Positions 21,241-47,164 of a DNA stretch of 64,000 bases are shown piece after piece. The notes beneath the pieces are model-generated. The model was not told the origin of the DNA. It searched no databases and was given only the letters and a program-made list of their open reading frames with translations. Made by a program: the position numbers and the translations under genes. The stretch's first letter is position 1. Each line of letters begins with the position of its first letter. Source of the DNA: Utricularia gibba (taxonomy: Eukaryota; Plantae; Magnoliophyta). The stretch lies in the NCBI GenBank assembly GCA_002189035.1, contig CM007991.1, positions 5,084,001 through 5,148,000 of the forward strand. The letters run 5' to 3'.

Positions 21241-21392
21241 GATTCTCCTTGCTTTACGCTTCTCCTATTCGCTCCCTTCTCTCTGCTCTTTCCTTTTTTC
21301 TTTTCCCACTCACAGGAAGGACATCTCCATCTATTTGCTGCTATTCTAGAAGGAAAATCTCTGCTGCAAATATTTTTTTTAGAGGGCGGTTA
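21104..21392. repeat. Long inverted repeat (foldback), arms ~135 bp (21104-21239 and 21259-21392), 19-nt loop
   Basis: AGAGATTTTCCTTCTAGAATAGC...AATAGGAGAAG is followed by its near-perfect reverse complement CTTCTCCTATT...GCTATTCTAGAAGGAAAATCTCT. Confidence 0.93.
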
Positions 21393-21612
21393 TTGACGAC
21401 AATCCTCTTGTCCTCTCAATCCTCCACGGAGGAATCACATGAGATTATTCTTGTGCCTCCTTGACAATCATGGTGTAAGCGAGAATGAACTTTTCCTTGC
21501 AATTAGAACCAATTACTCGAAAGGAATCAGTGAAAGTCGACGTGAAGATAGATAAAAGGAGAAAATGGAATCCATTTACTTGGAATTGCTTCCTTTAGTC
21601 AAGGTGTATTAC
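21385..21612 (+). repeat. Left part of an Athila LTR (33050-34297 family) cut by a hAT insertion; ends in TSD TGTATTAC (21605-21612)
   Basis: Colinear with 33885-34105 (GACAATCCTCTTGTCCTCTCAATC, GGAGGAATCACATGA). The continuation is at 44833-44643 on the minus strand. Confidence 0.88.
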
Positions 21613-22635
21613 TAGAGGTGGGTTCGGTTCGGAACCGTTCGGTTTTGGTTCCGAACCGAACGGTTCCAAAACCGCGGTTCGCCATGGGCAACGGTTCTGG
21701 TTTCGGTTCGGAATCGTATCCGGAAGGCTTGAACCGAACCGAAACCGAGATTTAAGAAACCGAACCGTAACCGAAACCGCGGTTACTGTTCGTAGGTACT
21801 TTCCAAGCACCCATATGAATCCTTATGGGTGTGTGGAAGTGAAATTTTTAATAAATATTAAATATTTAAACAATTGATTTTTATTTTAAATAAAATTAAT
21901 ATATATATATGAAAAATTATTTTTTTCAACTATATTTCTAATAAATTATTTTTAGTTTAAATCTTTAATATTTCTGAGAAAATATTTTTTTATTATTAAA
22001 AAGTGAATACATTTAAATAATTTACTCTTACAGTTTCACATAAAAATGAAACATAACAATGTTATATTAACATCATCTGTAAAATAAGTAATTTGGTGAG
22101 AGTTTAATATAATAATATGAAATAAATAAATTTGGTATAAGTTCAATATATAATAAATAATTTGGTATATGTTCAATATATAATATAATATGAAATGAGT
22201 TAATTTCACTAAAAATTAATAAATATTGTTATCGTCCATTTTGTAATTCGTATGATTGTTTTTTATGTTCAATTTTATAATTAATAGAAAAAACATGATT
22301 CAGTTATTAAAAATTTGAAGCGATATTACGTATTAGAAGATTTCGTAGGACGTATAAAAAAATGATACAAAATAATTTTCTAGTAACGGTACCTACTAAA
22401 TAAGTACTTTGGTAGGAGCCAGCAATAATAATACAAAATAATTCAATTTTACTGGAAAAAACAAATATTGTTGTTATCTCTTTTGTAATTTGTATGTTTG
22501 CTTTTATGTTTAATTTTATAATTTTCGTAAAAAATCTCAATTAGTTATTAGAAAAATAAGCGACATTTCCGAAATAATTAGATTGTCACGATTGAAATAT
22601 AATACTACAAAATAAGTCAAATCTTTTGAAAAAAA
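21613..22635. mobile_element. One terminus (~1 kb) of a hAT DNA transposon, truncated internally
   Basis: TIR TAGAGGTGGGTTCGGTTC followed by dense AACCG/CGGTT subterminal motifs (21613-21800). The motif CCAAGCACCCATAT is shared with the repeats near 49275. No closing TIR nearby, and the right boundary is approximate. Confidence 0.85.
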
Positions 22636-23168
22636 AGGATGTCCTCATCATCAAGCATGGTGGAGGGTACCTTAGTGATGGTGCGGCCTTGAGGTGAGCA
22701 AGGTTTCTACAATCCACAAATCCACCTCAAAGGTAATATTATCGTACTCACCGTCCCCTTCCTCAGAGAGTGAGCGTCTGCGTTCAGCGGCTGGTGGGCT
22801 GGATGCCTCTTCCACTTTCGTTTCCTCTTCTTCCTCCTCCAAGTCGTCCAGTCAAAAATCTTCATTGGAGCTATCGGTATGGGCCGTGGTTGCAACAGCA
22901 TCTTGCTCCGGTGTGTCATCTACAACTGGGTTAGGTGTAGCTTCTCTCTTCGGGGTTGCTGCTTGCATTTCCTAGGCTGCCAAAGGTTCCTCATGTTTCC
23001 ATGGGAGGTACAAAACAGGAGGAAGTTCGGCTAAAGGGATTGGGGAGAATAGTAGAGAAATCTCCTAGGATGAAGTTTCCAATGGGGGCATAGACTGATG
23101 TTTGTGAGGTCTCGATGAGGGTGAAGCCAAACGCGGTGGGTTCCTCCATGCGTCGCACAGTAGTGGTG

Positions 23169-24305
23169 GAAAAGATTCATATTGTGCTACAAAAATTTAG
23201 TTTTACTACCTAGCTTTATATTTTTGCGCATAAGTACCGGAATTGTGTTATTTTAGTCTTAGTTGGGACTAAATCTACGATTTAGTCTTAACCTTCTAAT
23301 AGTTTTACTCGAGCAATGCAGTGCAGGTCGCAATACGAATCCCAAGGAGCCAAATATGCACAGTGTAGTGGCAGAAGATGAGTCCAAAAGTCTGAAAAGT
23401 GGTACACACAAAATCCAAAGAGGAAAAAGGGAGATTTTGGACAAAAAGGGAGGAAAGATGAGAGAGAAGGCAGATCTCCCCTTGGAGACTCACGAACAAG
23501 TTTCTGGGGATTTATCTGGAGAAAGAAGGAGGGGATGACGAACCAAAAGAACACAGCTTCTCTTGAGAAATTATTTTCATTCTTCATGTTTACTGTTCCT
23601 AGCTAAGACTAGATTTGGATTTCCTGTGTGAACGAAGTGTCTGTCCTACTTTTGCTTCATATTGCTCGTTGTTGTTTAGCATTTGTAGCCAAGATGTTGC
23701 TTAGTATCTATGATGAAGATGTTTTACTTTCCATTACCATGAGTAGCTAAGCACTTAGAGGGGGGTGCCTTGGGGTGAAGAGGAGAGAAATATGCTAATC
23801 CATACTTAAACCTAATAAATCACGAGTCACACTACTTCCTTAACAAACAAAGATAGATCCAGGAGGGGGAGGTAGTGAAACCCAATTTAACAACCCTAAT
23901 TAGAGGTAGACCAAAGATTAGGGGGAAAAACAAGAATCCGGGTAGACCTAGATCTTGTGAGTTAGTTGTATGATTTTTTATTTATGTGAGCTTGTTTAGT
24001 GATAGGCATACATTCCCTAGGAGTCCCAAGGCATCACCCATTCCATCCCAGAAACTATCGAAGCCCAAAACTTGTTACTTTTCCTTACTGCATTCTATCG
24101 TAGTTCTGTTTTATTTCTAGCTAAGACCAATTTTACCAACATGACACTGATTACATGCATTAACACTCACATAGCAAGCACCTGCTCTTCGTGTTCGACC
24201 CTAATCACTATGCTCATAATTGTTTTATGCTTGAAGGTGTATTAGTTTATAAATTTATTTGATAGGAATATTTACATTTACGACGTGTAAATTTTTCGTT
24301 TATCA
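23169..24305 (+). mobile_element. Solo LTR (Athila-like)
   Basis: Ends AAATTTTTCGTTTATCA and is flanked on both sides by TGGTG (23164-23168 and 24306-24310). The 5' TG appears eroded. Host sequence is continuous across it. Confidence 0.75.
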
Positions 24306-25846
24306 TGGTGGAAGTAGTGGTGTGAATGGGGAAATGGGTAGTTATGGTGAGAGAAGGGTTCTAAGGAGGATACTCATGGAGGGAAAGGAAAGCAAAATAA
24401 TCAATGTCTCTCGGTAGTGGTGTGTGGGATAGCGTGTAATCCCAATAGAATCCTCGAGAACCTGCAACGTCAGAAAAAAGTAAAAGAGGAAAGAGAAAAT
24501 TAACTCACGAGTTGCCTCCCGTGCAGCGCCAATTTAAAATCGTTGGCCGACTTGGTACGCTACTGATGGTCCTTGAACAAGAACAAACAGCAAGCTGTTT
24601 GCAGGTAAAAGTTCTCATAATATCGTTTCAACCTATGGCCATTGATCTTGAAACATTTCCCTATCTCATAAGAACGTTTAACAACGACACCATAACGGAA
24701 AACATATGAAATTTCATAAGGTCCTTGCCATTTAGATCTTAGTTTTCCAGGAAAAAAATTCAAAGTGGTATCATATAAAAGAACTTTCTGACCAACTCGA
24801 AATTTCTTTTCATGCAACTTACTGTCATGGAAGTGCTTTACCTTCTCCTTGTACATCAAGTGAATGGAGTAGGCGTTCAAGCGAATTTTCTCTAATTCGT
24901 TCAGGTCCAGTAGTCTCTTTTCTCCAGCTTGATCACTAACCATATTGCAAGCTTTGATGGCCCCATACACTCTGTGATGAATCTCCACTGGAAGGTGGCA
25001 AGACTTGCCATAGGTCATGTGAAAGGGAGACATTCCAATGGCATTTTTATAAGTTTTGCGGTAGGCCCTCAACGCATCATTCAACCTGAGATTCTAGTCT
25101 CTTCTGATCGGATTCACTATTCATTCCAGGATGCATTTGATCTCCCAATGTGAGTTTTCAGCCTTCCCATTAGTTTGAGGATGCCTAGCTGTAGAAAGAC
25201 TATGATGAACTCCAAATTTCGTTAGCATGGCCCTTATGACATTGTTAACGAAGTGGGTACCTCTATAAGAAATGAGAATCTTAGGATAGCCAAACCTAGG
25301 AAAAATGTGAGAAGTCAAGAAATATTTTACAGTCCTTGCATCATCTTTCTCACATGCCATTACTTCGACCCACTGATAGACGTATTCAACAACAAGAAGG
25401 ATATAGATTTTTCCTTTTGATGAAGGGAATGGTCCCATGAACTCAATACCCCAAGCATAAAAAATTTTGCACATCACGATGGGCTGAAGTGGCATTTGGT
25501 CCCTAAAGCCGATGCCTCCACCTCTTTTGCAATTAGGGCATGCCTTGCAATGAAGGTATGCATCTCGTAAAAGATTAGGCCAATAGAAGCCAGCTTCCAA
25601 GACCTTGTTAGGTGTGACCTTTGGACCAAAATGACCCCCACAAGGTAGTTCATGGCAATGAGTAAGAATTGAATTCACTTCACCTTGAGGGATGCACCAA
25701 CGAAGGATTTGATTAGGTCTAATCTTCCATAGGTATGGGTCATCCCAAATGTAGTGCATGCTATCACTCCGCAACTTCTCTTTTATACTGGATGTCCTCT
25801 AGAAAATATCCTGTTACAAGAAAATTCACAATGTCTGCGTATCAGG

Positions 25847-27335
25847 TGTTAGTGTATGTATTCTAGAGACAATCAACTCATTGGCAAATCTTATCTTTAG
25901 ATATTTACTTTGATTTGTGATTAAATTCATATCATTGATAAAATCCTCTACTTATCTATGTGCTATAGAAATTATGATGAGATCATCATGTGAGATTCTT
26001 CAAACATTTATGTTCAAGTTAAAAATTCCCTGGCTAGAGTATTTGTGAAATGAGGATATCACAAATATGGATAAGCTGGCACATATTGAGTTCCCTAAAT
26101 TGTTTAGGCAATAGTTCTCACAATTGATGTAATGAGATTACTAGAACCTATCTGTGGGTGTTGATTAGAGAATTGATTCACTGGATGAATCATCTACGAG
26201 GTGCTACAATGGGAAGCTAACTAAATGTCAGTAGCAAGATCTTCAATATGACAGTCGTGCAAATAAGCTTAGACTTGAGGTCAACAAAGTTATCTTGATC
26301 TTAAGCTCACATTTTCGCTCATTACTAATGGGACTCTAACCATGACTTTCCTAGTATGGATGAGAAGGGTTATGACTCCTTAAGGTTGGAGATAGTTGAT
26401 TGATCAATAAAGGATTCATCACTCATGTTAGCTATGAGATCTTATCTCAATTAATTGCATCAAAGCCATTTTGGGCCTAGGGTAATGACACTCAAAGAGT
26501 TTGAGTAGGTCATTGAGTGTTAGTGCTTAAATGCACATATAAGTTAGATACATTAGAAAGACACATACTCATGTTCTGTTATCGAATGTGATATAAATAT
26601 GATGAAATCTATTCATTGCATGGTGGCTAGTCATGGAAAGGCTCAATTAGTTCACCTAATTATTCTTACATCTTGGGGATCATGATATATTCCTAGACAT
26701 CACTCATGATCGATAATGATGGATTTGATTAATTAAGAGTTAATTAATAAATCCATTATTATAGCCTTGATTGAAGAAGCCTATAGGGTCACACACGATA
26801 CTGGAGTCACTCATCGATATAAAATAGAATGACGCAATTACATGCGATGCAATTGGTAGAGTGGATAAATTAAATAGTGAGGTATTTTGAGATTAATAGT
26901 GACTAAGCTCAAAATGAATGATCTAATATAGATAAGATTGGGAACATATATGTATCTCCACAAGATAAAATCTTTATGGGGATTTGATTTGATATGTTAC
27001 CAAATATCTATTAGAAAGATGTGATCTACACATCTTCCTATATATTCGTGCTCTTTGAGACTGATCCGCAAGGGGGTGATTTTCTCTACTAGCACCTGAG
27101 GAGATCGATCATCATTTTTCTACCTTCAGAAGGTTATCAACGGAGTGCTTCACGTGTGGATAGCGTATAGGCCATCTACTATTGGCGGTAGGTGAACAAT
27201 GGAGTGCTCTTAAAGGTATTCGCAGTATCCCTTTATCTAATGTATACCGCATTCCAAGATCTGTGTTTGGAGTTTCTCAAAAAATTTCAAATTTTGGTGC
27301 TTTTTTGACATGTGATGTCTATGAGAAACCCAATA
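25847..27335 (+). mobile_element. Copia-type solo LTR inserted in gypsy pol
   Basis: TGTTAGTG...GAAACCCAATA termini. Flanks TCAGG and CTAGG both derive from CCAGG. Removing the LTR restores the PWYADIVNFL motif. Confidence 0.93.
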
Positions 27336-30333
27336 CTAGGGACTTCCATCATGGATCATAAATAAGTGCTCATCAGGGAAGTTGTCATCAATGGGGCTGG
27401 ATGCTTCTCTAGAGGTGATGCGGCTAACATGATCTGCCACTAAAATCTCGCATCCCTTCTTGTCTCGAATTACTAGATGGAACTCTTGGAGCAATAGGAT
27501 CCATCTGATAAGATGGGGTTTCGAATCCTTTTTGTTGAGGAGATACCTCAACGCTGCATGATCAGAGTAGACAATAATCGTGGCTCCAAGCAAGTAGGGT
27601 CTGAATTTTTCCAATGCAAAGATGATGGCCAAAAGCTCCTTCTCTATTGTTGTATAATTCCGCTGTGCATCATCCAGACACTTTGAGGCGTAGTGGATCA
27701 CATGTGAATCCTTGTCCAGCTTTTGTCCAAGGACTGCTCCTAATGCTACATCACTAGTGTCACACATTAGCTCAAAAGGAAAATTCCAGTTAGGTGCCTA
27801 AATGATGGGGGCCGAAATAAGTCTTTCCTTCAAAGTATCAAAAGCTAACTGAAAATTTTCATCAAAAGTGAAATCAACATCTTTGGGTAACAAGGCACAT
27901 AAGAGAGATGCAATTTTCGAAAAATCTTGGATAAACCTTCTATAGAATTCTGCATGAACAAGAAAGGAACGAATGTCCCGAACACAAGTAGGGTAAGGCA
28001 TATTTCGGATTACCTCAACCTTTGCTTTGTCCACTTCAATCCCTCTCTTGGAAGCTACATCTCCCAAGATGATTCCTTGCTCAACCATAAAATGACACTT
28101 CTCGTAGTTAAGCACAAGGTTAGTATCAACACATCTTTTCAAAATCAAAGACAAATTTTCTAAGTATTCATCAAAACTATTTCCATAAACAGTGAAATCA
28201 TCCATAAAGACCTCAATTTCTTCCACATACTTCGAAAAGATACTCACCATGCATCATTGGAAAGTGGCTGGTGCATTGCATAGTCCAAATGGCATCCTAT
28301 GATAGGCAAAAGTTCCAAAAGGTCAAACAAAAACTACCTTGGATTGATCTTCGAGAGCCATGGGAATTTGGTAGAAACTGGAGTATCCATCCAAGCAACA
28401 ATAATGGCTCTTATCTACAAGTTGTTCAAGCATTTGGTCTATAAAAGGAAGGGGATAGTGGTCTTTCCTGATGGGCGGAATTAAGCTTGCGATAGTCCAC
28501 ACACATCCTCCAACCATTCTGCACTCTTGTGAGAATCAGATCCCCTTGTTCATTGCTCATCACTATGATACCAGTCTTCTTTGGGACAACCTACACAGGA
28601 CTAACCCACTCACTATCAAAGATAGGATAAATGATATCTGCGGATAGCAGCTTCAAAATCTCCTTCTTGACCACTTCCACCATTGGGGGTTCAGTCTCCT
28701 CTGTGGCTATCAGATGGGCTTCATCCCCTCCTCTAGGTAAATCCTGTGAGTGCAAACAGAAGGGCTTATCCCTTTGATGTCAGCTAGAGTCCATCCAATT
28801 GCTTGTTTGTGCTCCTGAAGCACAGCCTTGAGCTTCTCCTCATGTTCCAAGGTTAGTGAACTAGAAACAATAACTGGTGGGTCTCATCATCATCAAGAAA
28901 CAAATATTTCAAATGTTCGGGCAAAGTCTTTAACTCTAATGATGGTGCTCGAATAACGGAGGGCACTAGCGGCTTGCTAGGTGTTTCCAAGCTAAGAAAA
29001 GAAACATCTTGCACATCAGGTTCATCGAGTGGATCGTTTGAATGATGAAAAATTTCAAGATCAGGGAGAGAAAAAATCTTCAGGTTGAGAAATTTTCGTG
29101 TCTAAATCATATTCGAGCCCTTGTTCATAGATCATTGCATAGTGATCAGTGTCATTTTGGCATGTGGAGATTGCATGTATTTCAATGATCTGATCAAGAT
29201 GCTTCATGGCTTTGTCAAGATTGAAGTCCAGCACCTATCCACTAAACTGAAGACTGATGGTGCCTGCTTGAATATCAATCTTTGTTTCTGCAGTAGCTAT
29301 GAATGGTCATCCCAAAAAAAATAGACTTCGAAACCTTAGGGTCATCACTCTCCATAGGAATGACCAAAAAGTCAGCTGGAAAGACTAAATCTTTTACATG
29401 AACAAAAACATCATCAATGCAACCATTTGGTGTAACTGCTGATCTATCTACTAATTGACATACAATACTTGTCAATTGAAGTTTGCCTAACTTAGATGCA
29501 AGAAGAAGTAAAGAGATCTAGGCATAACATTGACCGAGGCACCAAGATCACACATAGCTACTGAAATCATTGTATCTCCAATGGTAACAGGAATTGAGAA
29601 CATACCGAGGTCCTTACACTTACGTGGTATTCTCCTTTGAATGATGGCTGAAATGTTTTCAGTCAAAGGATTCATTTCTTGTTCCACCTTTGCTTTCTTC
29701 TTCGAGTCACATCGGTCCTTCAAAAACATGGCATGTTTGGGGACCTGTTCATTCATATCAAGAAGAGGAATGGAGACATTAATTTTTTTCATCATCTCTA
29801 TGAAAGTTTTTAGTCCTTTCTTGTTCTTGTTCCTTCTTCGAAGCCTCATCGGGAAGGTTGGTGGTATGACTAATGGTTTGGCTTGAGGAATTTCACTTTC
29901 ATCCTTCTCCTGAACATCTTCGAGTGGCTTCAAAAGATCATTGTTCTGTACTAGTGAGTCATATGGATTCTCACAAATGATCTCTTTGTGGACATCAGAA
30001 TCACTGTCTATGACTTCCAACTCCTTTTCTTTAGATTTATCCACCTTATTTGTGAACCATAGGTAAGGGTCTGGCAGGTCAGTTCCACTTCTCAACGAGA
30101 TGGCATTAATGTGCTTTGGATTCTGCACTAGTTGTGATGGCAATGCTCCCTTCATTTCTAAACGGTTCATTGCTTGCGCAAGCTAAGTAATCTGGCCTTG
30201 TATGCTAGTGATTTGGCCCTTCATATCCTTCTGCTCAGCATGCATCTTGGAGGTTCTTTCATCTAGAGATTTGACCATGGCCTCTAAACTGTAGTTCGAT
30301 TGAGGACAAGTCTAACGTCGCTGTAGCATAGTG

Positions 30334-31438
30334 TGATAGCACATAGATTTTTCCGTTTTTATGATATGAAAATCGCAAATTTTTAATTATCTCTAGTTTT
30401 TTATTTTATAGTTTTATGTATTTTTACATAACTTAGGAAAATGTGATTTTTTGTGTGTTAGTGGGCTAAATCCTTTGATTTAGGCTACCTCATGTTCTAA
30501 CTCGATTTTGAGTCTAGCAGCAAACCCAAAATCATGGAAGAAACAAGGATTTTGTGCAAGTCACCAGGCTGCATGGAGCAATGAATACACTGTCGTGGCG
30601 GTAGTTTACAAGTCAAGGGTAGGAGCAAGATAGCTTTCAAAGATTGTACTTACTTTGAAAAGTGAGAGGAGAGAGAAGGATGAGGAGAGAGAATCACAAG
30701 GGAGTGGTAGCAGTTTTCAACATACACACGAGGGGTATCTCCCCAAACTCGAACACGAAGAATATTGAACCAAAAGGAGAAAGAAGGGCGATTTTCTAAA
30801 GAAAAACCTCCGATGTGAAGAACAAAGATCAACTCCCAGTGCAGTGCTACTGTTCTAGCCTGTGAACAGTAGGAGATGGAAACCAGAACTCTTGCTACTT
30901 TACTTTCGTTTGTTGATGTTTTTAGTTTTTGCAACCACCTCTTTCATGATGTTCTTGACACTTTTGTCACTTTATCTTAATGTTATCATATTTTTCCATC
31001 CAAGTATGAGTAGCTAGAACCCTATGGATGCCTTAAGGTAAAGCATGGTGGTGTGGATCTAGGGTTAATAATAAAATTTATAGTTGTTTCTTAGTTCTTA
31101 TTTCTATCATTCCATGGGTAGACCTAAGGAGGGGCACAATTAACTTCACCAACTAAGAGGTAGACTAACAAATGAAGGTGGGAGCAGTAGGTATTAGTCC
31201 GGCGTAGAACCAGTAAAACCGGGTAGACCTAGTTCTATATACTTTCCATGCAGGTAGACCTAATTGCAATGTTGGTGATGACATTGATGACTAGCTTAGC
31301 CGAAAATATGATGAATGACCCCAAAATGCACTATACAAGTTTTCTGAATTTGTATTTTGTATGGATTAAGGCTTATAAATTTATTTGATACAAAAATTTG
31401 ATTTTATTGCAATGAAATTGCTAAATTTTCGTTTATCA
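30334..31438 (+). mobile_element. Unpaired Athila-like LTR (family of 39198-40535)
   Basis: TGATAGCAC...AAATTTTCGTTTATCA termini. It shares CCATGGGTAGACCTAAGGAG and GCAATGTTGGT...GACATT with 39830-40150. No convincing TSD. Confidence 0.8.
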
Positions 31439-33049
31439 CAATACCTCGCATAGTCAAATCTAGATTATAACCACCTAATCCTATCCATTGGTATGTAAAT
31501 AACTTCTCCATGAATCTGCTTCACTATATGCCTTCATCAGCAACTTCATTGATAAGTCAAGTTTTTCAGCTTCTTTTCAACATCCTTTCCTAAACTTGAC
31601 TGCTTTCTCATGACTATCTAGTATCTCAGTTTTCTGAACACATCCTCTTTTAAAGGTTTAATGGAGATGTCAGCAACTTGATCTTTACTCTTCAAATATA
31701 TCAGCTCAATTTGCTTTCTAGTAACTCTCGAATGTACCGAAATTTTGTTCCTATATGCTTGTTTCTTCCATGAAAAATTGGATTCTTCTCAAGAGCTACA
31801 CTAGACCTACTATCTATCATAATATTTGTCAGTTCAACCTATTTGATGCTAAGTTCTTCAGGTACAAAATGCAACCAAACCCCATGGTACACACGAGTTT
31901 GTAAAAAACATATTCAGGTGCACTACTTGAAAGAGTGACAATAAATTGTTTATTTGAGACCCAAGAAAATGAAAAATTACTAAAGAAGTGAGAAAAACCA
32001 GAAGTATTCTTGCAATCAGCTTTACTTCCAGCACACTCACTATTACTATAACCTAAAGATACTAGAGTTCCAATACCATATCCCATATGCACAGTCTCTT
32101 TTAAGTATCTTAATATCCTTTTGACTACTTTTCAATGAACTTTGCCTTGTTTTAAATCCATCTCAATTGGTGTAGAAGCAATATCACAATCATCCATCTA
32201 AACCTTTTCAAGGAGTTCTTTGGTGAATTTTTTGTTGGCTAATGAAGATTCCAAAAGCGCTTACCTTTACTCATGAGCCCCAAGTGTCATTTCACATGTT
32301 TTTCTCATTTCTCTCTTTAAGGTTTCAATACTAGAAATGTCTAAACCCAGGACAAGGAGATCATCAACATAAAGGCATATTATTATGTTGTCACTTACTG
32401 CATTCATCTTCACATATATAGTTGGTTCATGTGGATACTTGAAAAAATGTTTGTCTAAAAAGCAATTGTCTATTTTCCTTTTCCAAGCTCTTAGAGCTTG
32501 CTTGAAGTCATAAAGATCTTTTTGTTTAGACACAAAACGAGGTCTTCCTTTCCTTTAGAGAGATAGGCTTGAGGTTGTTCGATATAAACTTCTTCTTGTG
32601 AGACATCATTTAAAAATGCTGTCTTTAAGTCAAGGTGGAACACTTTCCATGCGTTTTTTCCAGCAAGAGCTAAGATCAACCTCATTGTCTCCATCTTGGA
32701 AACTGAAGCAAAAAATTCATCATAATCAATGCCCTCTTGCTGCTTGTAACCCTTTGAACCAAGCCAAGCTTTGTGTCTTTCAATCTATCCATTAGCTTTC
32801 TTTTGATCTTGTAAACCCCCTTCACATCAGTGGCATCTCTATCAAATGGTTTGTAGTAATAATCCAAGTGTTATTTTTTATTATTGAGGCTATTTCTTCA
32901 TCCATATCCTTTTTCCATTCTAGAAAATCTAGAGCATCTTCAAAATACAAATTTTAGAATCCACTAAAAGACAGAGTTCAGCAGCATCATAAAGAATTTT
33001 TTCTTGCATTTGTGTAAATCTCATGATAGATCTCTTTTCTCTTGGACCT

Positions 33050-34297
33050 TGTTAAGTGTCATTTTCTACTTGTTTATTATATATTATTATGTGCTAGATT
33101 AGCATTAAGTTTACCCAAATTAGGAGTTATATTGGCAAGTATTTGTTTTTATTTTGTTGTCATTTTCATACACTTTGACTAAAATATGTTAGACTTGTAG
33201 GAGACTTGTAGGAGACTAGACACTGACCTTTCGTGCCTAACATGCGACTTGAACCAATTGTGGGTAAAAGACTAACACTAGTGAGGGCTCTTGACTTATG
33301 GTATGTCAGACTCTGTGGCAATGATTGGGTGCTTACTTGTATGTATAAGAAAGCTAGTTGCGCATGTAAGATAGAAAAAATGATGGAAAGAGAGCAGAGG
33401 AAGTTAATGTATGTGGAGAGTGAATTAAAACAAATTGGGAACAATTTGGATCCGACCTTTTTCTCACTTACTTTCACATTGGAACTTTTGGTTCTTCCTC
33501 TCCACCAAGGGAGGAAGAACACTTTACCTTTTTATTTTCATGGCCATTCGTGGCTAACCCTTTTTAGTTTTTTGGAATAGATAAAGTTTCCTTCTACGTC
33601 TTGAGCATCAATATTAGTTCTTTGTTGAATTTCTTCAGGATTTTGCATATTTCCATGCATCATGTTGTAGTCTTTCTATAACATCTTTTGGTCATGGTCC
33701 ATGAGTAGCAGGCCACTCCTCACAGATTTTGATGAAGAGCAAGGTGAAGAGCAGCATCATCTCTAGCCTTTCCAATTTGAGGGAAATAGTGAATTTTTTA
33801 TGATCAAGGTACCACAAGAGTCGTCCGGTAGTGACCTCGAACTCACCACTGGTCATTGGCCCACACATGCGCATAATTCGATTTTGAGGGCAATCGATGA
33901 CAATCCTCTTGTCCTCTCAATCATCCAAGGAGGAATCACATGAAGCTATTCCCCAGCTTCCTTGTCAATCAAAGTGTAAGGCAAAGTAGGTTATTCCTTG
34001 CTCTTATACCTAGTTATTCAGAAGGAATCAGTAAAAGCCAAGGCGAGGATCGATAAAAAGAGGAAATGGAATCTCGTTCCCAGGAACTGTTTCCCTTGGT
34101 CAATGTTCATTACTTATGTGTTATTTTATATTTCAATAGTTTTAAAACCCCATTTTACAAATTCATGACAATTTTTAAATGTCCAGTACAAAACACTTTC
34201 CACAAAACTCAACTTCCTGATATCTATACTCATACTACGCTCATCTGTGTTTTACATTTTTCTAAATTAAAATTAGTGGAGGAAACAATACGCAACA
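33050..34297 (+). mobile_element. Athila solo LTR with 5-bp TSD
   Basis: TGTTAAGTGTCATTTTCT...ATACGCAACA termini; flanks GACCT / GACAT (4/5 match). Confidence 0.9.
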
Positions 34298-35078
34298 GAC
34301 ATATAGCATTTGATACATCTATACTAGAAGAAGAAATGTCTTGATGCTATTGTGTTGTTGAATCATATGGGCCAGGAGAAACATTTCTAGCAATATCATC
34401 ATCAAGTTCTTTCAAAGTGACAAGATCACAAAACGTATAGTTTCGATTTTTTCTTTGTCAATCCCAACTTGAAGATTCATCAAAAACCACATTAGCATTG
34501 TGATGCATTTTATTTTACATAGGATAATAAAATTGATATCCTCTCAAATCATGATCATATTTAGAAAAAATCATTTTTCTACTTTTTTCAGTCAACTTTC
34601 CTCTTAATTGATCAGCAACATGAAAATTGGCCACACAAACAAAAATAAACTACCTCTGGTTTGATCCTTGTCCAAGCCTCCTATCAAGTCATATGAGGTA
34701 CACTCTTAGTCAAAGAGTGCTTAGAAGAAATATAGCGGTATATGGTGCATACCCCCATACTCCTTTAGCATCCTTTGGGCATGCCCCTTACCATATTCAT
34801 CTCCTTCTTGTTTCTTCTCTCGAATATGAGGGGAGTAGGCAGTTGCAAGAGGTTTTCTTAGACCAACAATTTTACAAAACTCTTGTTTCTTCACTTTAGT
34901 TTGTGTCTAGGATTAGAATTTTTTGAAAGTATCAAACACTTCAGATTTGAACTTTAGGATACAAATCAACATTTTTCTTAAATAATCATCATCAATTAGT
35001 AAGAAGTATTTATTTCCTTCAATAGAAAGCATTTTCATAGGATCACACACATCAGCATGAGCTAGTTCAAGAGGCACC

Positions 35079-36245
35079 TGATAACACCATTTTTATTGTG
35101 TTTTTATATGTGTTTTTAGGTATGTTTTGTAGGGTTAAATGTTGTTTAGTGTGCTAACTTGTCTCCTTTTTTGTAATTAGTTTGTTGAAATGTGTTTATT
35201 GTGAAAATAGGCTTAATTGGCAACAATTGAACTAAAAACTCTCATTTTTCCTCTAGTATGTGTTTAAGTGTTAATAGGATAAGAGTTAGTATTGTAGCAG
35301 CACATTTCCACGTTGAAAAGTCAAAAGAAGCAGAAAAGCTGAGAAAAAGCCACTTTTTGCGAAAGCAGCTACCTTCTGACAAGATAACATCTAGAGCAGA
35401 GATCTTACTTCTAGAACCCCATGGAAAAGATGGAGATACCCTTATTTTGAGTGAGAAAAGGAAAGAGGAAGAGGAAAGAGAGAGAGAGAACAGTAGCGGG
35501 GCGGTGAGCAGGGAGAAATGTGTTTCTTCGGCGAACAGCTTCGGCAGCCTATAGATCTACTTCTCTAGACCATGTTTCTGCCTAAAACTTCGATTTTCTG
35601 TAGATCTACCACCTAGAGAAACAGCTTGACTATTTATTTCAGCATTATGTGCTTAGATTTTCATTGTCGAACATGCTACTGTTATTTTCCGTGTTTCATT
35701 GCTTCTTGTTATGTTTGTGGTACTTTTTTGTGAACGAGAAACTTAATATGGACCTTATTTAAGCTTATGAACATGTTCCCGTTTAAGCACTTCGTGTTTG
35801 CTTTTAAGTTTAACATATTATTTACTATACCCGCGACCCTTTGCCTTATTTTAAAGCATGCTAAAACTGGGTTTAAGCCTATGGGTTTTAAAGACACAAG
35901 AGTCAGATCATAGTCTAAAACCCATCCAAATCACTTTCATTTTATGGCTCTGCACATTCCTGTTAATTTATATGCCTCTTCGTGCCTGCAACTCGTTTAT
36001 TTCAGCTACTACTATTTTATTTCTTACGTGCATTATAGCTAAACCCCCAGAAAAACCCCTCTGTTTTTAGTAAATGTGATCAACTTCAGGAAATTGCAAC
36101 CATTCCTTGTGAATTCGACCCTTACTTACTACACTACATTAACTCCTGTGATTTGTGTAGTAGAATAGTTAGGTTTATAAATTTCTTTTGATGCGTTGAA
36201 TGTGCTAGACTACGACATTTAGCAATCCCATTCTAAAGTTCATCA
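35079..36245 (+). mobile_element. Athila solo LTR with 5-bp TSD, inserted just upstream of the copia integrase core
   Basis: TGATAACACC...AAAGTTCATCA termini; flanks GCACC / ACACC (4/5 match). Copia sequence resumes on both sides. Confidence 0.92.
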
Positions 36246-39197
36246 ACACCATTGCTCTATAAGTAACTGCCTTGGAGATAATATTTCGAGTGTGTTCCCC
36301 TGTAAGACATCCTTTACATAGTTCACTAGGATGGCAAATTTGAGGAAGACCAAGTGCTATTCTTTTCTTATTAGGAACATGTAAGTGGTCAAAATTTACT
36401 AGCCGAGACCTTATTAGGACAAATTGTCTTCATTTTGGGAATAAACAATCTATTAGAATTCATATGAAGATGAGCCAAATTATCACTACCTTCTTTAGTA
36501 AGCACCAGCATTTTTCCTTTTGAATAAATTTAATACCCTATTTCTAGCAACTAATCCAAACTCAAGATACATCAAAGATAAGCTTATGACTTTCATCTTC
36601 CAACTTCATCAAAATGGAGCATTTTCTTGCAACTTTCGGCTTTGAGTTGTGTCCTTGTGATATTTCTCCATGGTGACTCTCATTAAGAGTAGAGAGTATC
36701 CTTTTGTACGCACACATATGGCTGCTACCACCAAAATCCAAGTATCATCTTGAAAAATCAGGATTTTCTTCTCTAAAAGCCATCAGCGAAATTGGATTGT
36801 CTTCTTGAGTGAAATTAAATTGCTGAAGTTCTTGTTTGTTTCTACATTCCCAGGTATAGTGACCCTTTTTTTGACATGAACAACACTCAATAGTAGATTT
36901 ATTTCTAGACCTTGGATTATTAAATATTGCATTACCTCTTGATTTCCAATTGCCTTGCCTCTCCAATTCCATCTTCCTCACAATGGTTGTGAAGACATTT
37001 CTTCACCAAACTTTCCATGACCATTATTGTTCTCTTTATTTGCATACAGACTTCCTCGTTCGCTCCCTCTTTCATAGAAACTTCTTCCTTGACCTCTTCT
37101 CCTTCTTGTACTATCTTGCTCCTGAGGTTTTGTAGTTTTCTCTTACGAAAGTTGAGGAGATTCTTCATCTCTTTCACCTCAGCATGCATAGGGACATAAC
37201 TCATCAATGGACATTTCACTTCAATCATTGGCCTATTCAATGGCCCTCGTAATATTATCATATTTTTTGTCAAGAGATCTCATCACTTTCTACACTATTC
37301 TTTCATCACTTATCTCCTCCCCTTGTCACATTTGATTTGTGATCATCTACATCCGTACCACATTTCAAAGCACCTTCACTTGATTTCTACTTTAGCCCTT
37401 CAAATTTTCCTTTAAAGATTGCAACTTTACGATCTTCACTTTATCAACTCCTTGGAAAGAAGCCCACAACATCTCCCATGTTTGCTTTGAAGTAGTAGCC
37501 TTTGCTACCTTGTCAAAAAGCTTCCCATCCAGTGCTTGGTAAATTAATGACTGAGATTTCTTATGGCTTTTCTACCCTACAGCATTCCTCTCAACTAGAG
37601 TCTCAAAGATCACATCCAAGCACTCATATGCACCAATAGTGCTTGCATTTTGAAGGCACCAAATCTCAAAATTTTCTTTATTAAGTTTAGGGCTGGAAGA
37701 TTCACACTAGCCATCATGAACTAGCTCTAATATGGATTTGTTGTAAACAAAGGAAGCCAACTTTGTTAAATTTTGGTTTTGTGGTGCACAATTGAAAATA
37801 TTATTGAGGGAGTATATGTAAAACCCTCAGAGAAAATTATCTTGTACATCACTTTTGAGCATATTAATTCAACTAAATAGAATCTTATGAATTTGTTGTG
37901 GTCACTTTTAGCATAGCCTACAATGCCATTCTCAAAAGGGCAGATATCGACACTATTATGAGTGATTTAGATACTTTGCTTTATTAAGGTGTGCCCATAA
38001 CATTTAATGTGCTAGAGATCCAAGAAAGCAAGATAAATAGACAATGATGTGATGACTTGAAAAACTAAAAAAAGCGAAGGTGCTTTCACATTAGGAAAAG
38101 GATTTCAACTGATGAAAATGTGACACAAAAATAGGTTACTTCTAAGTGTTTATTGTAAAATTTGTTGAAGGTGAACTTTTCTAGGTTGCTCTCTCCTTTT
38201 CCAGCTTTCTTTGTCCATGAAAAAATGACTAGATGTCCATGCTCTCCCCTTTTTCTCCATCGTATAACTAGCGAAACATCTTACGGTTGGAGGGGTTTTT
38301 CTTCTTTTAGCTAATTACTCTATCTTAACTTCCCTAAAGGTAATTAATACTCATATGTTTAGGAAAAGTAGTTGTCATCCCAATCGTTGGGATGAGAACT
38401 CCTAGTTGATCACTAAGGTCTTACTAGAATCCTTAATATCCTATTAGGCCTAATTGATGGCTATAAAGTTCATTGGAATACACACTGGAAGGTTTTTGAA
38501 TAGGGGACTAAAGGACTTATCAAGTGGAGCCCAACTATTATCTTGATGGGACAATTTGAGCATCACTATGAACACCTTGTTGGGCCTTAATGTAATCTTC
38601 TTGATGATTAATTCAAGGAGGTTATCCTCCCTCTATAACACTAGTCCCTTGGGCCCCAAAAATATATTGTTATGAAGTTGTGGGTTCAACTTGTTACATT
38701 GGTGAACATGTTCTAAGTAGACATGGAATGTCACCTCGCTCCCTTATGTGCTTTGGGGGAGATTGAAAAGGGAAAGGTGACTTGCATCTATAGGGTTTTT
38801 AGAGAGCTCCTAACAAGAGTGAGGTAACTCGTTGAGGTAAAAGGCTCCATAATGGATTTAAGTGTATTGCACAGAGTTGGATTTTGCAAGTATGCAATCA
38901 TGACTCTTTTTTAACTCCTTTTAATTTCAAATGCCTTTTCACATTCCTATTAGTTTTTTTGGTGCTTCCCATTCACACTCTGGAAATTTCTATTCAAGTT
39001 TCTCTGTTCAAATGTAATTTCCAATTCTTTTGATCTCTTAATCGATTCACAAAAGCCCTCTCTTATCTTGAGTGTAAGAACTTAGACCTCATTTACCTCT
39101 AAGATATGTAGAAGGCTTCAATGATGATGAGGCTGAGGAAAGGAAGAACAAGCTCCTTTCATTGGCCTCAACCTTTGTGGGGCTCTGATATGTCACT

Positions 39198-40535
39198 TGA
39201 TGACACACATTTTTCCTGAATTTTATAATACGAAATAGTTATATTTTATTGTGGTTTAGGTTAGATAAATGTGTTTTTTTTATGTTTATGTGTGTTTAAG
39301 TTAATTTTGTGTGTTTATGTTAAAAAGTGGACTAAATACTTTGATTTAAACCACCACCTTTGTTACTAATATTTGACTAAGTTAAGCAGAGAGATCAGCA
39401 GAGACAAAGAGCACTATTCTACCGCCATCAACAGTCTGCAAGTTCAGGGCGGGAACAGTGCTAGGGTCAGGAACAATGCAATAGAGTGAAGGAGAGGAGA
39501 TATTTAATTTCGAAAAGGAGAGAGAGCGGGAATAGCAATAACAGAGGCGGCAAGCATAGAACGCACACAAAGGGGGCTTCTCCTCCAATGCGAAAAAATA
39601 CCAACCAAAAGAGGAGAAGGAAGCCCTCATCGTCAAGAGCAGCACCAGAGCCCCGTCTAGCGCTACTGTTTTGGGCCGTGAACAGTAGAAATCGGGCGAT
39701 AGAACAATCTTTATTTCCTTTCCGTTTTCTGAACGTTTTGAGTTTTTGTATCTGACTTGCTTACAATGTTCTTGTTATTTTCGCCACATTATCTGAATGA
39801 AATCGTGTTTTATTTTCTAAGTATGAGTAGCTAAAGCCTTAAGGATGTCTTAAGGTGAAGTATGGTGATGTGTGCTTAGGGTTAATAATGAAATTTATGT
39901 TTGTTTTTTAGCTCTTGTTTCTATCAATCCATGGGTAGACCTAAGGAGAGGAATAAATAGCTTCACAACTTAGATGCTTGATTTAGAGGTAAACCAACAA
40001 ATCAAGGCGGGAGCAGTAGGTGTTAGTCCAGGGTAGAACCAGTAGAACCAGGTAGACCTAGTTCTATATGCTATGCATGCGGGTAGACCTAATTGCAATG
40101 TTGGTTATGACATTACGTAGTAGCTTAGCCAAAAATATGATGAATGACCTGGGTAGACTTAGGTTATTTGAAGTTGTGAGTGTAGGAAAATGTTAAATTA
40201 AATTAGGAACCTTAGCATAACACCACCTACAGATCCTTAAGGCATCTTCATGTTATTCTGAGTTAGAACCACTCCTTGTTACCTTTAGCGTTAAGACCTG
40301 ATATTGTTTACTGATCTTGTTTACCACTATTGGTCCGAGCTTAGACTAAGACTTACTGTTATTCCGAATGATGCATTTACTAAAACACTTAGCAAGCACA
40401 AGCTCTTCGTGATCGACCCCGACATCCATTATACAAATTTTCTAAATTTGTATTTTGTGTAGATTAGGGACTATAAATTTATTTGATAACGAAATTTCTA
40501 TTTTTGCAATGACATTAGGAAATTTTGGTTTATCA
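39198..40535 (+). mobile_element. Athila-like LTR, probably solo
   Basis: TGATGACACAC...AATTTTGGTTTATCA termini; flanks TCACT / CCATT (3/5, both differences transitions). Homologous to 30334-31438. Confidence 0.78.
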
Positions 40536-42914
40536 CCATTGCATATCATTCCCTTGACCTTAGGAGCCTTCAAAATTGTTGAGTTTCTCATTGTATCAAT
40601 TTTTTTAATTACTTTTCTAGTGATGTTGAGGGTTCTTGCCTTTGTCCTTCACCCTTGTGTCTTTGCAACCCTTACAACCTACTTCATTTCATCTTGATAA
40701 CAAGGTATCACTCCCTACCAAGACCATTTTCTTGGGCTTCATGACATTTGAAAAATGCATACCATTAGGATCGGTGAGTCAAGGGAACAATCAAAACTTA
40801 TTTTCACTCTCATCTCTCAAATGTGAGAGTTTGTGCTGTCCAAACTTGCAACCACTTGGGTTTCATGGTGGCTATATGGGCTCTAGTACTACTAGTTGAA
40901 GGCCACCAAGTGCAGCTTCTGCACAATCCCAAGCTTGGTCCAAATCTTTTGACTTTGAAGCTCTTTTGGTATTGCCAAATGAGGATGCTTCCCTAACTTG
41001 TTGCCTTTGAGGTGACATAGAGTTGCTATCTATTATACATTTTGTGAGTAGGAAACCTTGCTTGAAATTTACGAGCAAACACAAGTGGGCTGTAGGGGAT
41101 TGGGTAAGTCCAATGAGGATAAAGAGGACTCAATCCTAACTCTACCATCAAGCTTTACATGTGATTTGTCAACTAATTGACAAACCACACTAGTGGGCTC
41201 AAGTTTACCTAGCTTATATGCAAGGGAAAGATAAAGAGACATAGGCATAACATTAACCGATGCTCCTAAATCACACATGGCAATTGAAATTTTCGCATCA
41301 CCAATAGTCACAGGTATGGAAAACACACTAGGATCCGTAAACTTTCATGGAGTCCTTCTCTGAATAATTGATGAAATATTTTCAATCAAATAAAACACCT
41401 CTTCCACCTTTGCCTTCTTCTTGAGGTCACACAAGTCCTTCACCTTTTTTGCATACTTGGGCACTTGATCGATCATGTCCAACAAGGGGATGTTCACGTT
41501 GACCTTTGCATGTCTCTGACCTTCACCTCTTTAGGGTGGCGTCGCCACAATAGTGTTTTGAACTAGAGAACAATCTGGATTCTCGCAAATAATCTCCCCA
41601 TCCATATCTAAGACGTCTAATTCTTTTTCTTCAGACCTATCAACCTTATTCATGAACCCTAGGTAAGGGTCTGAAAGATCCTTCCCACTTCTAAAAGATA
41701 TTGCATTGATGTGCTATGGGTTCTTCACTGGCAGGGGTGACAATCCTCCTTGCATCTCCAGTCAGTTCATCGCTTGCATTAGCTAGGTGATTTGAGTTTG
41801 CATGCTAGTGATTCATCCATCCATGTCCTTTTGTTTGGCATGCATCTTGGTGGTACTCTTGACAAGGGATTTCACCATTGTGGTAAAGAACAAGAGGTTG
41901 ATGTAGAGCTCAAGTGATCTAAAAGGCTGAGGTGAAGTAGTGAGAGTTTTCTAAGGAACAACAGAAGGGTTCCCTAGTGATGGTGCTTGACTAGAAGGCA
42001 CTGGTTGTCTCCAGCAGAAACTAGGGTGATCTCTTCTTGGCATCTAGTAGTTTCAGTTGTTCTAGGTTCTGATAGAACACATTAACCTCTTGTGTTAGCA
42101 TCTGATAAACTGTGGGTCCTAGATCAGAATGATGACAGGTTGAAGATCCTTGATACCATCCTTGATGTTGGAGAAGTGATTGGAAGCCAAGCTTTAGAGT
42201 ATTACTCATGATAGCAAGTTGAGCTAAAATTTCAGAGTTATCCACTTCATACACTGATTTCACCGGCTAGGGAACTCCTCTAAGTGATCAATATGAGTGA
42301 TCGTATCAGCTCGAAGTTGAATAAGAATTAGCAATCATTTGTTCTCTCAATCTTCGTGCATCAGTGTTGTGGCAGTTTTCCAGTAATGTCCCATTATAAG
42401 CGGCATCCATTTGTCCTCTAATCATGGTGGTCAATCCTTCATAAAAATGCCGCAAAATAAGTCCATGTTGTGGATAAGTGTTACAGATCCAGTTGAATCT
42501 CTCATAATATTCCTGCGAATTTTCTCCTTCACTTTGTTGCTTGACAGTTAAAGCTCTTCTTTCAGTGGAGCCTCTTCCTAAGAGCACATATCTATCAAGA
42601 AACTTTTGAACCATTTGCTTCTAGGTTCCAAAAGAGGATGGTGGCAGTTCATACAGCCATTCCAAGGCTTGCTCAGTGAGACAGAAAGGGAAGACCTGCA
42701 GCTTGACTTGGTTCTCTATTGTAGTTTTTGGGCACATGCATGCACAAGCCGTGTGCAACACTGTAAGATGGTGATTTGGGTTATCATTCTCTCTTCCATC
42801 GAACTTAGGAAGTGTCAAAACATATATGGGCATATCTCAAGTCCTCTTTCGCATAAAAAATAATGCAAAGTGGTCGATTAGCATGATTGGCAGTAATTTC
42901 TTCTTTAATCGTCC

Positions 42915-44271
42915 TGTTGGTGTATGTGTTCTAGAGAATCAATTCATTGGCAAATCTTATCCTTTGATGTTTACCTTGAATTGTGATCAAGTTTACATCA
43001 TTGATAAAATCCTCTACTTGATCTATTGCTATAGAAATTATGATGAGATCATAATGTAAGATTCAAGTTAAAAACTCCCTGTGTAGAGTGTTTGTGAAAT
43101 GAGGATATCACAAATACGGATAAGCTAGCACACATTGAGTTCCCTAAACTATTTAGGCAATGGTTCTCACAATTGATGTAATGAGATTACTAGAACCTAT
43201 GTGTGGGTGTCGATTAAAGAATCGATTCACTGGATGACTCATCTTCGAGATGCTACTATGGGAAGCTAACCAAGTGTCAGTAGCAAGACCTCGAATATGA
43301 CAGCCGTGCAATTAAGCTTAGACTTGAAGTCAACAAAGTTATATTGATCTTAAGTTCACATTTTTGCTCATTACTAATGGGAACCTAACCATGGCTTGCC
43401 TAGTATGGATGAGTAGGGATGTGACTCCTTAAGGTTGCAGATAGTTGATTGATTAATAAAGGATTCATCACTCATGTTAGCGATGAGATCATATCTCAAG
43501 TAATTGCATCAAAGCCTAACAGTAAGTCCTAGGCTCAAGGTAATGACACTCGAATTGTTTGAGTAGGTCATTGAGTGTTAGTTCTTGAATGCAATTATAA
43601 GTTCGATACATCAGAAAGACACACACCCATGTTCTGGTATAGAATGAGATATAAGTATGATGAAAGCTGTTCATTACTATACATCACTCATGAACGATAA
43701 TGATGGATTTGCTTAATTAAGAGTTAATTAATAAATTTATTATTACGGACTTGATTGAAGAAGCCTATAGGGTCACACACAATAATGAAGTCACTCATCG
43801 ATATAAAATAGAATGACAATTAAATGAGATGTAATTGGTAAAGTGGATAAATTAAATAGAGAGCTATTTTGAGATTAATATTGATTAAACTCAAAATAAA
43901 ATATCTCATAGAGATATGATTTGATATGTCACAAAATATATATCAAAAAAGATTTAGATTTTAAGATCTGCTCTAAGGTCTTCGTGCTCTCTGAGACTGA
44001 TCCACAAGGAGGCATTTTTCTCTACTAGCACCTGAGAAATTCGACCAGCATTCAAGAGCCTTGAGAAGGTTATCGATGGAGTGCTCCACGTGTGGATACC
44101 ATAGAGGCCGTCTGCTATTGGCGGTTGGTGAACAACGGAGTCATCTGAAAGGTATTTTGAACATCCCTTCATCTGATGTATACCGTATTCCAAGATCTGT
44201 GTTTGGGGTTTCTCAAAATTTTTAAAATTCCGCTGCTTTTGAGACATACGATGTCTACGAGAAACCCAACA
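42915..44271 (+). mobile_element. Copia-type solo LTR inserted in gag
   Basis: TGTTGGTGTATG...GAGAAACCCAACA termini; flanks CGTCC / GGTCC (4/5 match). Colinear with 25847-27335. Confidence 0.93.
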
Positions 44272-44616
44272 GGTCCTTAGTGCTGAGCCATGATTAGTAA
44301 TCATTAGAACTGGAAAATATTGAGGATGTTGTTGCTCCTATTCCTCGTGAACCATGGGACTCCAATGGGTCGTTAAGCGGCCATTTCTTCGCCAGTAGAT
44401 GAATCTGATGCTTGTTCTCTCTTTTTCGCTAGAAATCTATTCTCAATCTCCAAATCGAAGGGACACAAGACTTCTCGAAATGATCTCAAGCTTCGGTAGC
44501 CCTTCGGTGGAGCTAAATGCATAAAAACTGAAAAATACAGCAGTAAAAGAGAAACAAAGAAAAAAAGAAGAAAGAAAAAGAAAACCTATAAGCACCACTA
44601 ACACAAACATACACAA

Positions 44617-44640
44617 CTCCCTAGCAAACGACTCAAAAAA
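44617..44640 (-). promoter_or_regulatory. Degenerate Athila primer-binding site
   Basis: TTTTTTGAGTCGTTTGCTAGGGAG lies immediately after the LTR CA end; compare the intact TTTTTGGCGCCGTTGCTGGGGAG at 46712-46734. Confidence 0.6.
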
Positions 44641-45359
44641 TTTGTTGTGTATCATTTTCTTAACAAATTTTAATTTACAAAAACATAAAACACAAATAAC
44701 CGCAGTACAAATGTCGATTTTAGAGAGTTGAGTATTGCCAAAAGTGTTTTGCACTAAACTTTTACAAATTATCACTGGTTTGTAAAAAGGGTTTCTCAAA
44801 TACAGAAATAAAAGATGCAACGCTAGTAATACATAGAGGTGGGTTTGGTTCGAACCGGAACCACGGTTTCGGTTTAGTTCGACATAATTGGAACCGTGGA
44901 ACCGACGGTTCTGATCCGTGTGTGAACCGTACTGTTCACGGTTTTAGAAATCGGATTTTAAAAAAAGGTAAAAAAAATTAAAAATAAATTAAAAACAATT
45001 AAAAACAATTTAAAAAAATTAGAAAATTAAAAAAATTAAAAAAATTAAAAAAAATAAAATAAAATAAAATAAATGTATATTATTTTTTACATTTTTCTCA
45101 TTCATACATACGAAGGAAATGGGTGCCTAAAAAATCTTCTCAAACACTGATGGGGTCTAAATCGATTTTCGCACTTAACAAACACCTCTTCCCAGACACA
45201 CTCACGCCAGATGTGGGTGCCTAGAAAATGGTCTCAGATACCCTCACGACACACTCTCTGAAATTACATACACTTATTTTTCATCTTGTTGATTTCTTTT
45301 GTTCACAAATAGCAATATACATCGATGGCTTTTGAGATGGAATATTCATTGTCTTCTTT

Positions 45360-45610
45360 GAACCACGCCCATGTGTATCCCACATTAACGCTACCTATGA
45401 AATAAGTAATTTGATAAGAGTCCAATACACGAACGCGGATTATACATCAACAATGCCCATATGTATCCTGTATTAACGTTATGTATGAAATAAGTAATTT
45501 GGTAGAAATCCAACACACGGACATAGGTTATGCATAAACCACGCATGTGTGTATCCCACATTAATGGCACCTACGAAATAAGTCATGTGGTACGAGTCCA
45601 ACACATTTGT
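45360..45610 (+). repeat. ~88-bp degenerate tandem repeat x3 in the hAT subterminal region
   Basis: TGTATCCCACATTAA...GAAATAAGT...TCCAA(T/C)ACAC is repeated three times. Confidence 0.8.
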
Positions 45611-45987
45611 GTATTCAACTCCTACAAAATTACTACTTTCATAGGTAGGGCTAATATAAAATAATTCAATACATAAATTTAAATACATAAATCAAAGTTT
45701 ATGTTGAACATTGTTTTTTGTTGTAAAACAAATAAGTAAAACAAAAATTAATATTTAAAAATTCCAATTTATATGATTATTCGAGAATGAAATATATGTT
45801 GTATATTATTCACATAAAAATAAATTATTAATTTTTTATGTAGACATATATTAAGCTCACTTGTTTATTGAACTATAACTCAATAGATTTATATGCTAAA
45901 ATAGAATAACAATAATTCACAAAATATTTTAGCATTTCATTATCTATATATTTTTCTCAATAACTAGTTATGCATTGCCAAGCTAAT

Positions 45988-47160: not shown

Positions 47161-47164
47161 CAAA

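Follow-up and report, generated by a model that had tools for sequence, protein, structure and literature searches.

Zhang and Peterson, in 2004, reportedly described maize inversions produced by reversed-ends transposition (RET) of Ac/fAc. In such inversions at p1-p2, each breakpoint carries one transposable element (TE), one of them inside the inverted segment and one just outside it, with 8-bp target site duplications (TSDs) (Sharma et al. 2021, PMC8225341). Another route is represented by Galileo in Drosophila, where inversions are reported to arise by ectopic recombination between inverted TE copies (PMC2775673). Here, we analyze a 64-kb stretch of Utricularia gibba DNA, referred to as the window, within which all counts of terminal inverted repeats (TIRs), 8-mers, and motifs were made. 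We show that it carries what reads as one hAT transposon insertion, with one 8-bp TSD, in one Athila-like long terminal repeat (LTR), the two halves of which are now oppositely oriented.

The TIR TAGAGGTGGGTTYGGTTC is present in only two copies in the window, at 21613 and 44834, and both lie on the plus strand. Each is preceded by an 8-mer, and these 8-mers, TGTATTAC and GTAATACA, are exact reverse complements. On the left, TGTATTAC (21605-21612, plus strand) abuts the TIR TAGAGGTGGGTTCGGTTC (21613-21630), and on the right, GTAATACA (44826-44833), which reads TGTATTAC on the minus strand, abuts the TIR TAGAGGTGGGTTTGGTTC (44834-44851).

21605-21612, plus strand: TSD copy 1, TGTATTAC, aligning with the single TTCATTAC or TTCATCGC of the intact LTRs
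44826-44833, minus strand: TSD copy 2, GTAATACA on the plus strand and TGTATTAC on the minus strand

A scan of both strands with the 18-mer, allowing up to three mismatches, returned two sites, both on the plus strand, with 0.04 expected by chance. The TSD 8-mer by itself is common (three matches versus 1.9 expected), and its weight as evidence stems from its position next to the TIR, not from its rarity; the chance of an exact reverse-complement 8-mer abutting the second TIR is 1 in 65,536. Clusters of AACCG/CGGTT, defined as at least five per 200 bp, were found only at 21562-21859 and 44793-44993, and next to the TIRs the density of these motifs reaches up to 17 per 200 bp.

Two other interpretations of these ends were rejected. 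The 8-mers are not parts of an extended TIR, being reverse complements of each other and not identical. Likewise, the element at 44834 is not a complete copy with a far TIR and TSD of its own: a minus-strand TIR is lacking, as a 10-mer scan of the window with one mismatch yielded no convincing minus-strand terminus, and to the right there is neither a third AACCG cluster nor a further TGTATTAC or GTAATACA.

The sequences flanking the two TIRs identify the target. Both are halves of an LTR, for which the window provides an uninterrupted reference and, at 45988-46709 on the plus strand, a further copy.

21392-21604, plus strand: left LTR half A, its own 5' part missing, with a 290-bp palindrome upstream
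44643-44825, minus strand: right LTR half B, 72-75% identical to 34115-34297 and 67% identical to 46621-46832
33638-34297 (also delimited as 33864-34297), plus strand: uninterrupted Athila-like solo LTR, used as the colinearity reference

In a self-BLAST comparison, 21392-21613 on the plus strand matched 33893-34114 with 75% identity, and 34109-34297 matched 44830-44643 on the minus strand with 72% identity; half A was also 69% identical to 46276-46395. We aligned the two halves, entered as separate rows, with two intact LTRs using MAFFT (alignment A2). The flanks 21392-21612 (plus) and 44833-44643 (minus) aligned end to end on the two uninterrupted LTRs, the left half ending and the right half starting with the 8-mer on the same columns. 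In the intact LTRs, these columns hold a single occurrence, reading TTCATTAC and TTCATCGC. From there, half B is colinear in A2 onward to the LTR end and then to the primer-binding site (PBS). This PBS, following half B on the minus strand at 44620-44635 (TGAGTCGTTTGCTAGG), is decayed and reads TGAGTCGTTTGCTAGGGAG, and an intact version, TGGCGCCGTTGCTGGGGAG, is located at 46717 after the 45988-46709 LTR. Next to it lies gag-start homology (44273-44582 versus 47143-46834, 67%). A PBS of the TGGCGCCGTTGC type is one that we take to be Athila type, tRNA-Asp-like. With LTR, PBS, and gag start present, the target is, judged by sequence, an Athila-like Ty3/gypsy LTR retrotransposon; among the gag-start open reading frames (ORFs), no match to the Pfam ATHILA model was obtained.

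Directly upstream of half A lies a near-perfect palindrome of 290 bp (21104-21392), with arms 86% alike. Its arm is part of a repeat of about 425 bp, found at 20815-21241 and again downstream of the solo LTR, at a distance of 0.8 kb (35079-35501).

The opposite orientation of the LTR halves implies that the intervening block has been inverted or that a block was wrongly oriented in the assembly, as nothing else gives this arrangement. The ends of the hAT transposon that landed in the LTR now lie 23 kb apart and face the same way, from which it follows that at least 22 kb was subsequently flipped. The original prediction had proposed inversion of the intervening block after a single hAT insertion, from co-oriented TIRs with a shared inverted TSD at 21605-21630 and 44826-44851 and from an LTR that, once rebuilt, would be colinear with the uninterrupted solo LTR and run on into PBS and gag. 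The sequence reads as described there, with no further 18-mer sites; self-BLAST and A2 both confirmed the colinearity, with the halves meeting on the same columns across the TSD; and TSD, TIR orientation, and LTR halves jointly bear out the inversion. Two independent insertions of same-family elements at the same position of oppositely oriented LTR copies, each later halved, would mimic this pattern only in an extremely improbable series of events. General target preferences of hAT elements are all that speaks in favor of such a coincidence. It would need an identical position and an identical 8-mer, although other LTR copies differ there (TTCATTAC, TTCATCGC), and in addition complementary truncations and complementary element ends.

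The inserted element itself is represented by three fragments, referred to as F1, F2, and F3.

21613-22636, plus strand: hAT fragment F1, with TIR (21613-21630), AACCG-rich subterminal region, AT-rich interior, and repeats of about 245 bp
44834-45987, plus strand: hAT fragment F2, 1,154 bp, with TIR (44834-44851), AACCG-rich subterminal region, and interior motif units
47144-52460, plus strand: hAT body F3, with transposase, second gene, and family-specific motif repeats to about 52460

Termini of hAT elements are short TIRs beginning with YARNG, and the subterminal repeats of Ac are motifs of the AAACGG type. The termini observed here begin with TAGAG, and the TIR TAGAGGTGGGTTYGGTTCG fits YARNG. 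The 8-bp TSD, TAGAG termini, subterminal repeats, and nearby transposase point to a hAT element. Between F1 and F2, the first 19 bases differ at a single position, AACCG repeats are present in both, and each contains three interior units of 35-60 bp (AAATAAGTAATTTGGTA type), while the rest does not align. This is as expected if F1 and F2 represent opposite ends (5' and 3') of one element type. In F1, the third repeat unit (22572-22636) matches 22398-22461 through an A-run, after which the sequence changes abruptly. This cut in the middle of a repeat unit at 22636 indicates a break and not a natural element end.

To the right of F2, transposase domains (47113-48936) begin 2.3 kb from the second TIR, with an Athila fragment in between; Pfam searches detected zf-BED at 47113-47364 (E=5e-5) and Dimer_Tnp_hAT at 48265-48936 (E=2e-22). 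A second gene at 50127-50990 combines a Transposase_28-like start with phosphatase-like exons, as seen from ORFs and tblastn. The family motif GTAGGTGCC, searched with at most one mismatch, has 14 matches, 13 of which fall within 22388-22412, 45213-45566, and 49014-52355. This distribution suggests that the transposase region, along with everything as far as about 52.46 kb, belongs to the same hAT family as the end fragments. Beyond the Athila fragment, F2 most likely resumes at 47144 with the transposase, followed by the second gene, and reaches at least 52460. In a large database, the proteins closest to a 224-amino-acid transposase ORF were RICESLEEPER-like hAT proteins of other plants, with 37-57% identity. 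A search with this ORF found no same-species copies of the transposase and provided no canonical copy. A metagenome scan with the TIR returned eight loci, none of them related to the window, which are chance matches.

Quasi-palindromic motifs (GGGTGCCTGGAAAA ... CCCAGACACCCAC) are repeated at 49000-49430 and in F2 (45110-45260), and a related copy is found in F1 at 21790-21840. These motifs may be binding sites or family-specific subterminal repeats.

The fragments are complementary, with one terminus of each type and one transposase in the window, and F2, F3, and F1 sum to about 7.5 kb, to which a deleted N-terminal piece of the transposase has to be added. With both of its ends pointing the same way, the element is no longer functional. 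We tentatively favor, at somewhat less than an even chance, a history in which the hAT insertion was followed by an ordinary two-break inversion of about 30 kb. An autonomous hAT element of roughly 7.5-8 kb would have inserted in the 5' LTR of an Athila-like retrotransposon, duplicating TGTATTAC, a step shown by the TSD copies and the split LTR. Later, as we infer, two breaks would have led to the flipping of about 30 kb, from 22637 to approximately 52.5 kb. Break 1 would fall within the element at 22636/22637, leaving 1,024 bp up to one terminus, and break 2 beyond the element body, most likely at 52.46-52.81 kb; positions at about 54.3 kb and 55.36 kb are less likely. F1, as the short terminal piece, would have remained beside LTR half A. 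Everything else belonging to the element (F2, the Athila remnant nested in it, the transposase, and the second gene) would have moved to the opposite orientation, and half B would have been flipped along with it, as would the PBS, gag, and nested retrotransposons amounting to about 22 kb. This model explains the presence of one terminus of each type and a single transposase, the mid-repeat cut in F1, and the summed length of the fragments plus the deleted piece.

Since the right-hand hAT piece very probably extends to at least 52.46 kb, a simple inversion would span about 30 kb and not 22 kb. Of the approximately 22-kb inversion proposed in the original prediction, the inversion itself stands and the size depends on the mechanism: the option of ordinary insertion followed by inversion gives about 30 kb, and RET gives 23.2 kb. 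The boundary placed near 22635 was recovered, in that repeat homology stops in mid-unit at 22636 and contigs branch there. The right-hand piece is not a short end; F2 comprises 1,154 bp and is followed by the Athila piece and then the probable element body to 52.46 kb.

Several observations weigh against the two-break model. Nucleotide and protein comparisons of 22637-24562 with 44834-57000 did not uncover the reciprocal junction, and the rest of the broken repeat unit of F1 is seen nowhere in the window. Re-inversion restores continuity on the LTR side in A2, and the other side was not located in the window. The searches yielded no full-length copy of this hAT family for comparison. Moreover, in a read check that compared 20600-24600 with contigs of four runs, no contig among those listed bridges 22636.

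The contig data also bear on the validity of the assembly. A contig of 2,182 bp from X1, which may be the source genotype, matches 20600-21866 with 0 mismatches and bridges the LTR/TIR junction at 21612/21613, and a 106-bp contig from another study (X6) bridges the same junction with four differences. Contigs of X1 and X2 end or branch exactly at 22636. In X1, a 12-letter loose end, CACTTAATTCTG, precedes 22636; it could represent the un-inverted junction, and no match to it was found in the window. Should the block have been placed in the wrong orientation, the joins at 22636 and on the right-hand side would be false. This we consider improbable, despite the absence of a listed contig crossing 22636, a position that follows an A-run in an AT-rich repeat within the 20600-24600 covered by reads. 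There is no N in the window, no inverted repeats flank the block that might mislead an assembler, and contigs from two studies span the junction between half A and the TIR. With coverage this low, one contig gives way to the next roughly every 200 bp, and branching of graph contigs is expected at a repeat boundary; thus, the gap at 22636 is unremarkable and neither supports nor refutes the junction.

The lack of a detectable second breakpoint draws attention to a one-step alternative, RET, in which two linked hAT copies in direct orientation would have been involved, F1 being a fractured 3'-end piece and F2 to F3 belonging to a transposase-bearing copy. Their facing termini would have been cut together and inserted in the Athila LTR about 22 kb away, the TSD arising from the same event. 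This would have inverted exactly 21613-44833 (23,221 bp), and the DNA between the two termini would have been discarded. In topology, the locus matches maize RET inversions exactly, with a TE terminus and a matching 8-bp TSD at each breakpoint (PMC8225341), and a second breakpoint is unnecessary, in line with none having been found. In addition, F1 resembles fAc in being fractured and having a single end, and F2 has a same-family transposase gene next to it. On the other hand, extra events are required: a second copy must have existed and been fractured at 22636, and the F2-F3 copy must have lost its 3' end separately. The window shows neither a third terminus nor any other sign that two copies were present, and the complementarity and summed length of the fragments would be a coincidence. 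RET is possible in our view, if rather unlikely. Equally doubtful, though worth keeping in mind, is the broader proposition that a one-step RET by an endogenous cargo-carrying hAT family produced a natural, fixed inversion outside maize Ac/fAc, with the transposase-bearing partner beside the breakpoint.

Two further Athila-like pieces, referred to as 'a' and 'b', complicate the region to the right of F2.

45988-47150, plus strand: Athila-like fragment 'a', with LTR, PBS TGGCGCCGTTGCTGGGGAG, and gag start; right edge within 15 bp on either side
52461-55362, plus strand: candidate distal side of the reciprocal breakpoint, with a Transposase_28 gene, a polypurine tract (PPT)-like tract, and LTR 'b'
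54364-55362, plus strand: Athila 3' LTR 'b', truncated, following the PPT-like tract

Fragment 'a' starts exactly at the LTR terminus TGTTAAG and ends about where the BED-finger region begins. We infer that it is a remnant of a retrotransposon that integrated in the hAT element and was later mostly deleted together with the N terminus of the transposase. LTR 'b' carries a 625-bp segment (54536-55160) that is absent from 'a'. The LTRs of 'a' and 'b' are 83-85% alike, co-oriented, and bracket the hAT transposase and its cargo. This bracketing is a further point against the two-break model, as neither a single inversion nor RET explains the arrangement. It raises the possibility that the inversion is real and that several events were involved, with more than one inversion or deletion in the retrotransposon nest, including one that placed the transposase between 'a' and 'b'. 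The truncation of the 3' LTR at 55362, the lack of the 5' part of the hit LTR beside the 290-bp palindrome, and the truncation of several retrotransposons of the block are consistent with such a history. Nevertheless, the block between F1 and LTR half B appears internally colinear, because its probable copia LTR pair brackets its own gag and reverse transcriptase (RT), and one element plus one nested remnant account for all hAT pieces. We regard a multistep origin as distinctly unlikely and retain insertion followed by a two-break inversion as the preferred reading.

The Transposase_28 gene with a coiled coil at 52808-54260 (Pfam, E=1.5e-9) has an architecture resembling that of free-standing Transposase_28 proteins. 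A library-wide search with its Transposase_28 ORF returned only distant relatives, with at most 36% identity, which are informative for domain architecture only. Transposase_28-like coding sequence occurs three times in the window: at 50139-50330, the start of the second gene of the hAT element; at 52808-53458, a fuller gene that ends in a coiled coil and immediately precedes the Athila PPT; and at 13989-14129 near 14 kb, a short piece on the minus strand. Directly after the truncated LTR 'b', 55363-55372 reads GTGTTAAGGG and repeats the 7-mer TGTTAAG of the Athila LTR starts, which may be due to chance or may mark the edge of another nested element.

The sequence between F1 and LTR half B, designated block M, is a nest of retrotransposons.

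22637-44642, minus strand: block M, 22,006 bp, now inverted
22637-23145: single-copy stretch, by contig depth
23146-24351: high-copy repeat, by contig depth
24563-30278, minus strand: Athila-like Ty3/gypsy integrase, RNase H, RT, and protease (Pfam)
25847-27333: probable solo LTR 'R' within the gypsy element, between RNase H and integrase
30835-40539: probable nested copia element, containing the Athila solo LTR (33638-34297, plus strand)
Right part of block M: protease, gag, probable solo LTR 'R', and PBS of the retrotransposon targeted by the hAT insertion

Contig depth at 23146-24351 was hundreds to thousands of times that of the single-copy neighbor 22637-23145 in all four runs, and no second copy of this repeat was found in the window. 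Direct repeats of the copia element, 30835-31442 and 39651-40539, are 76-80% alike and bracket a zinc-knuckle gag (36748-37002, minus strand) and RVT_2 (31832-32784, minus strand). This organization points to a probable old copia element at 30835-40539, nested between two elements of the gypsy type. A TG...CA unit of 1.4-1.5 kb was detected three times, at 42915-44272, 25847-27333, and 13512-13928, the first two copies being 86-88% alike. The copy at 42915-44272 is flanked by GGACC/GGACG and sits within the gag start of the element that was hit; the unit is probably a solo LTR of another family.

The block is apparently made up of transposons only, and host genes begin near 56 kb; a direct phenotypic effect of the inversion is therefore unlikely. 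What the locus offers is a natural inversion resolved to the base pair, one side of which can be fully rebuilt from the transposon footprint, that is, the TSD and the split LTR. Loci of this kind allow structural changes in repeat-rich plant DNA to be dated and oriented. Were alternative transposition the true cause, natural populations would be shown to undergo chromosome remodeling by hAT elements, comparable to that by Ac in maize stocks.

With respect to the described systems, the locus shares with maize RET inversions a hAT terminus at each breakpoint, one TE piece inside and one outside the inverted segment, matching 8-bp TSDs, and an inverted block of tens of kilobases. In maize, the two-element progenitor was known and the events were caught de novo, whereas here the locus stands without a progenitor, the fractured piece lies inside the inversion, and a plain inversion after insertion fits equally well or better. 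Ordinary two-break inversions of the nonhomologous end-joining type likewise have one break in the element and one outside it, leave complementary parts, and preserve the original TSD; the reciprocal junction is normally shown in such cases, in contrast to the present one, where it was not identified in the window. In Galileo-type inversions, TE sequences are also found at both ends of the inverted segment, but the mechanism needs inverted homologous copies at both breakpoints and exchanges TSDs (PMC2775673). In contrast to that pattern, the TIRs in U. gibba are co-oriented, the ends are nonhomologous beyond the termini, and one TSD is common to both; comparing 21613-22700 with everything to the right of 44834 revealed no inverted homology beyond the motif units of 35-60 bp. 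This locus clearly illustrates, in nature, an already known type of transposon-linked inversion and not a new mechanism.

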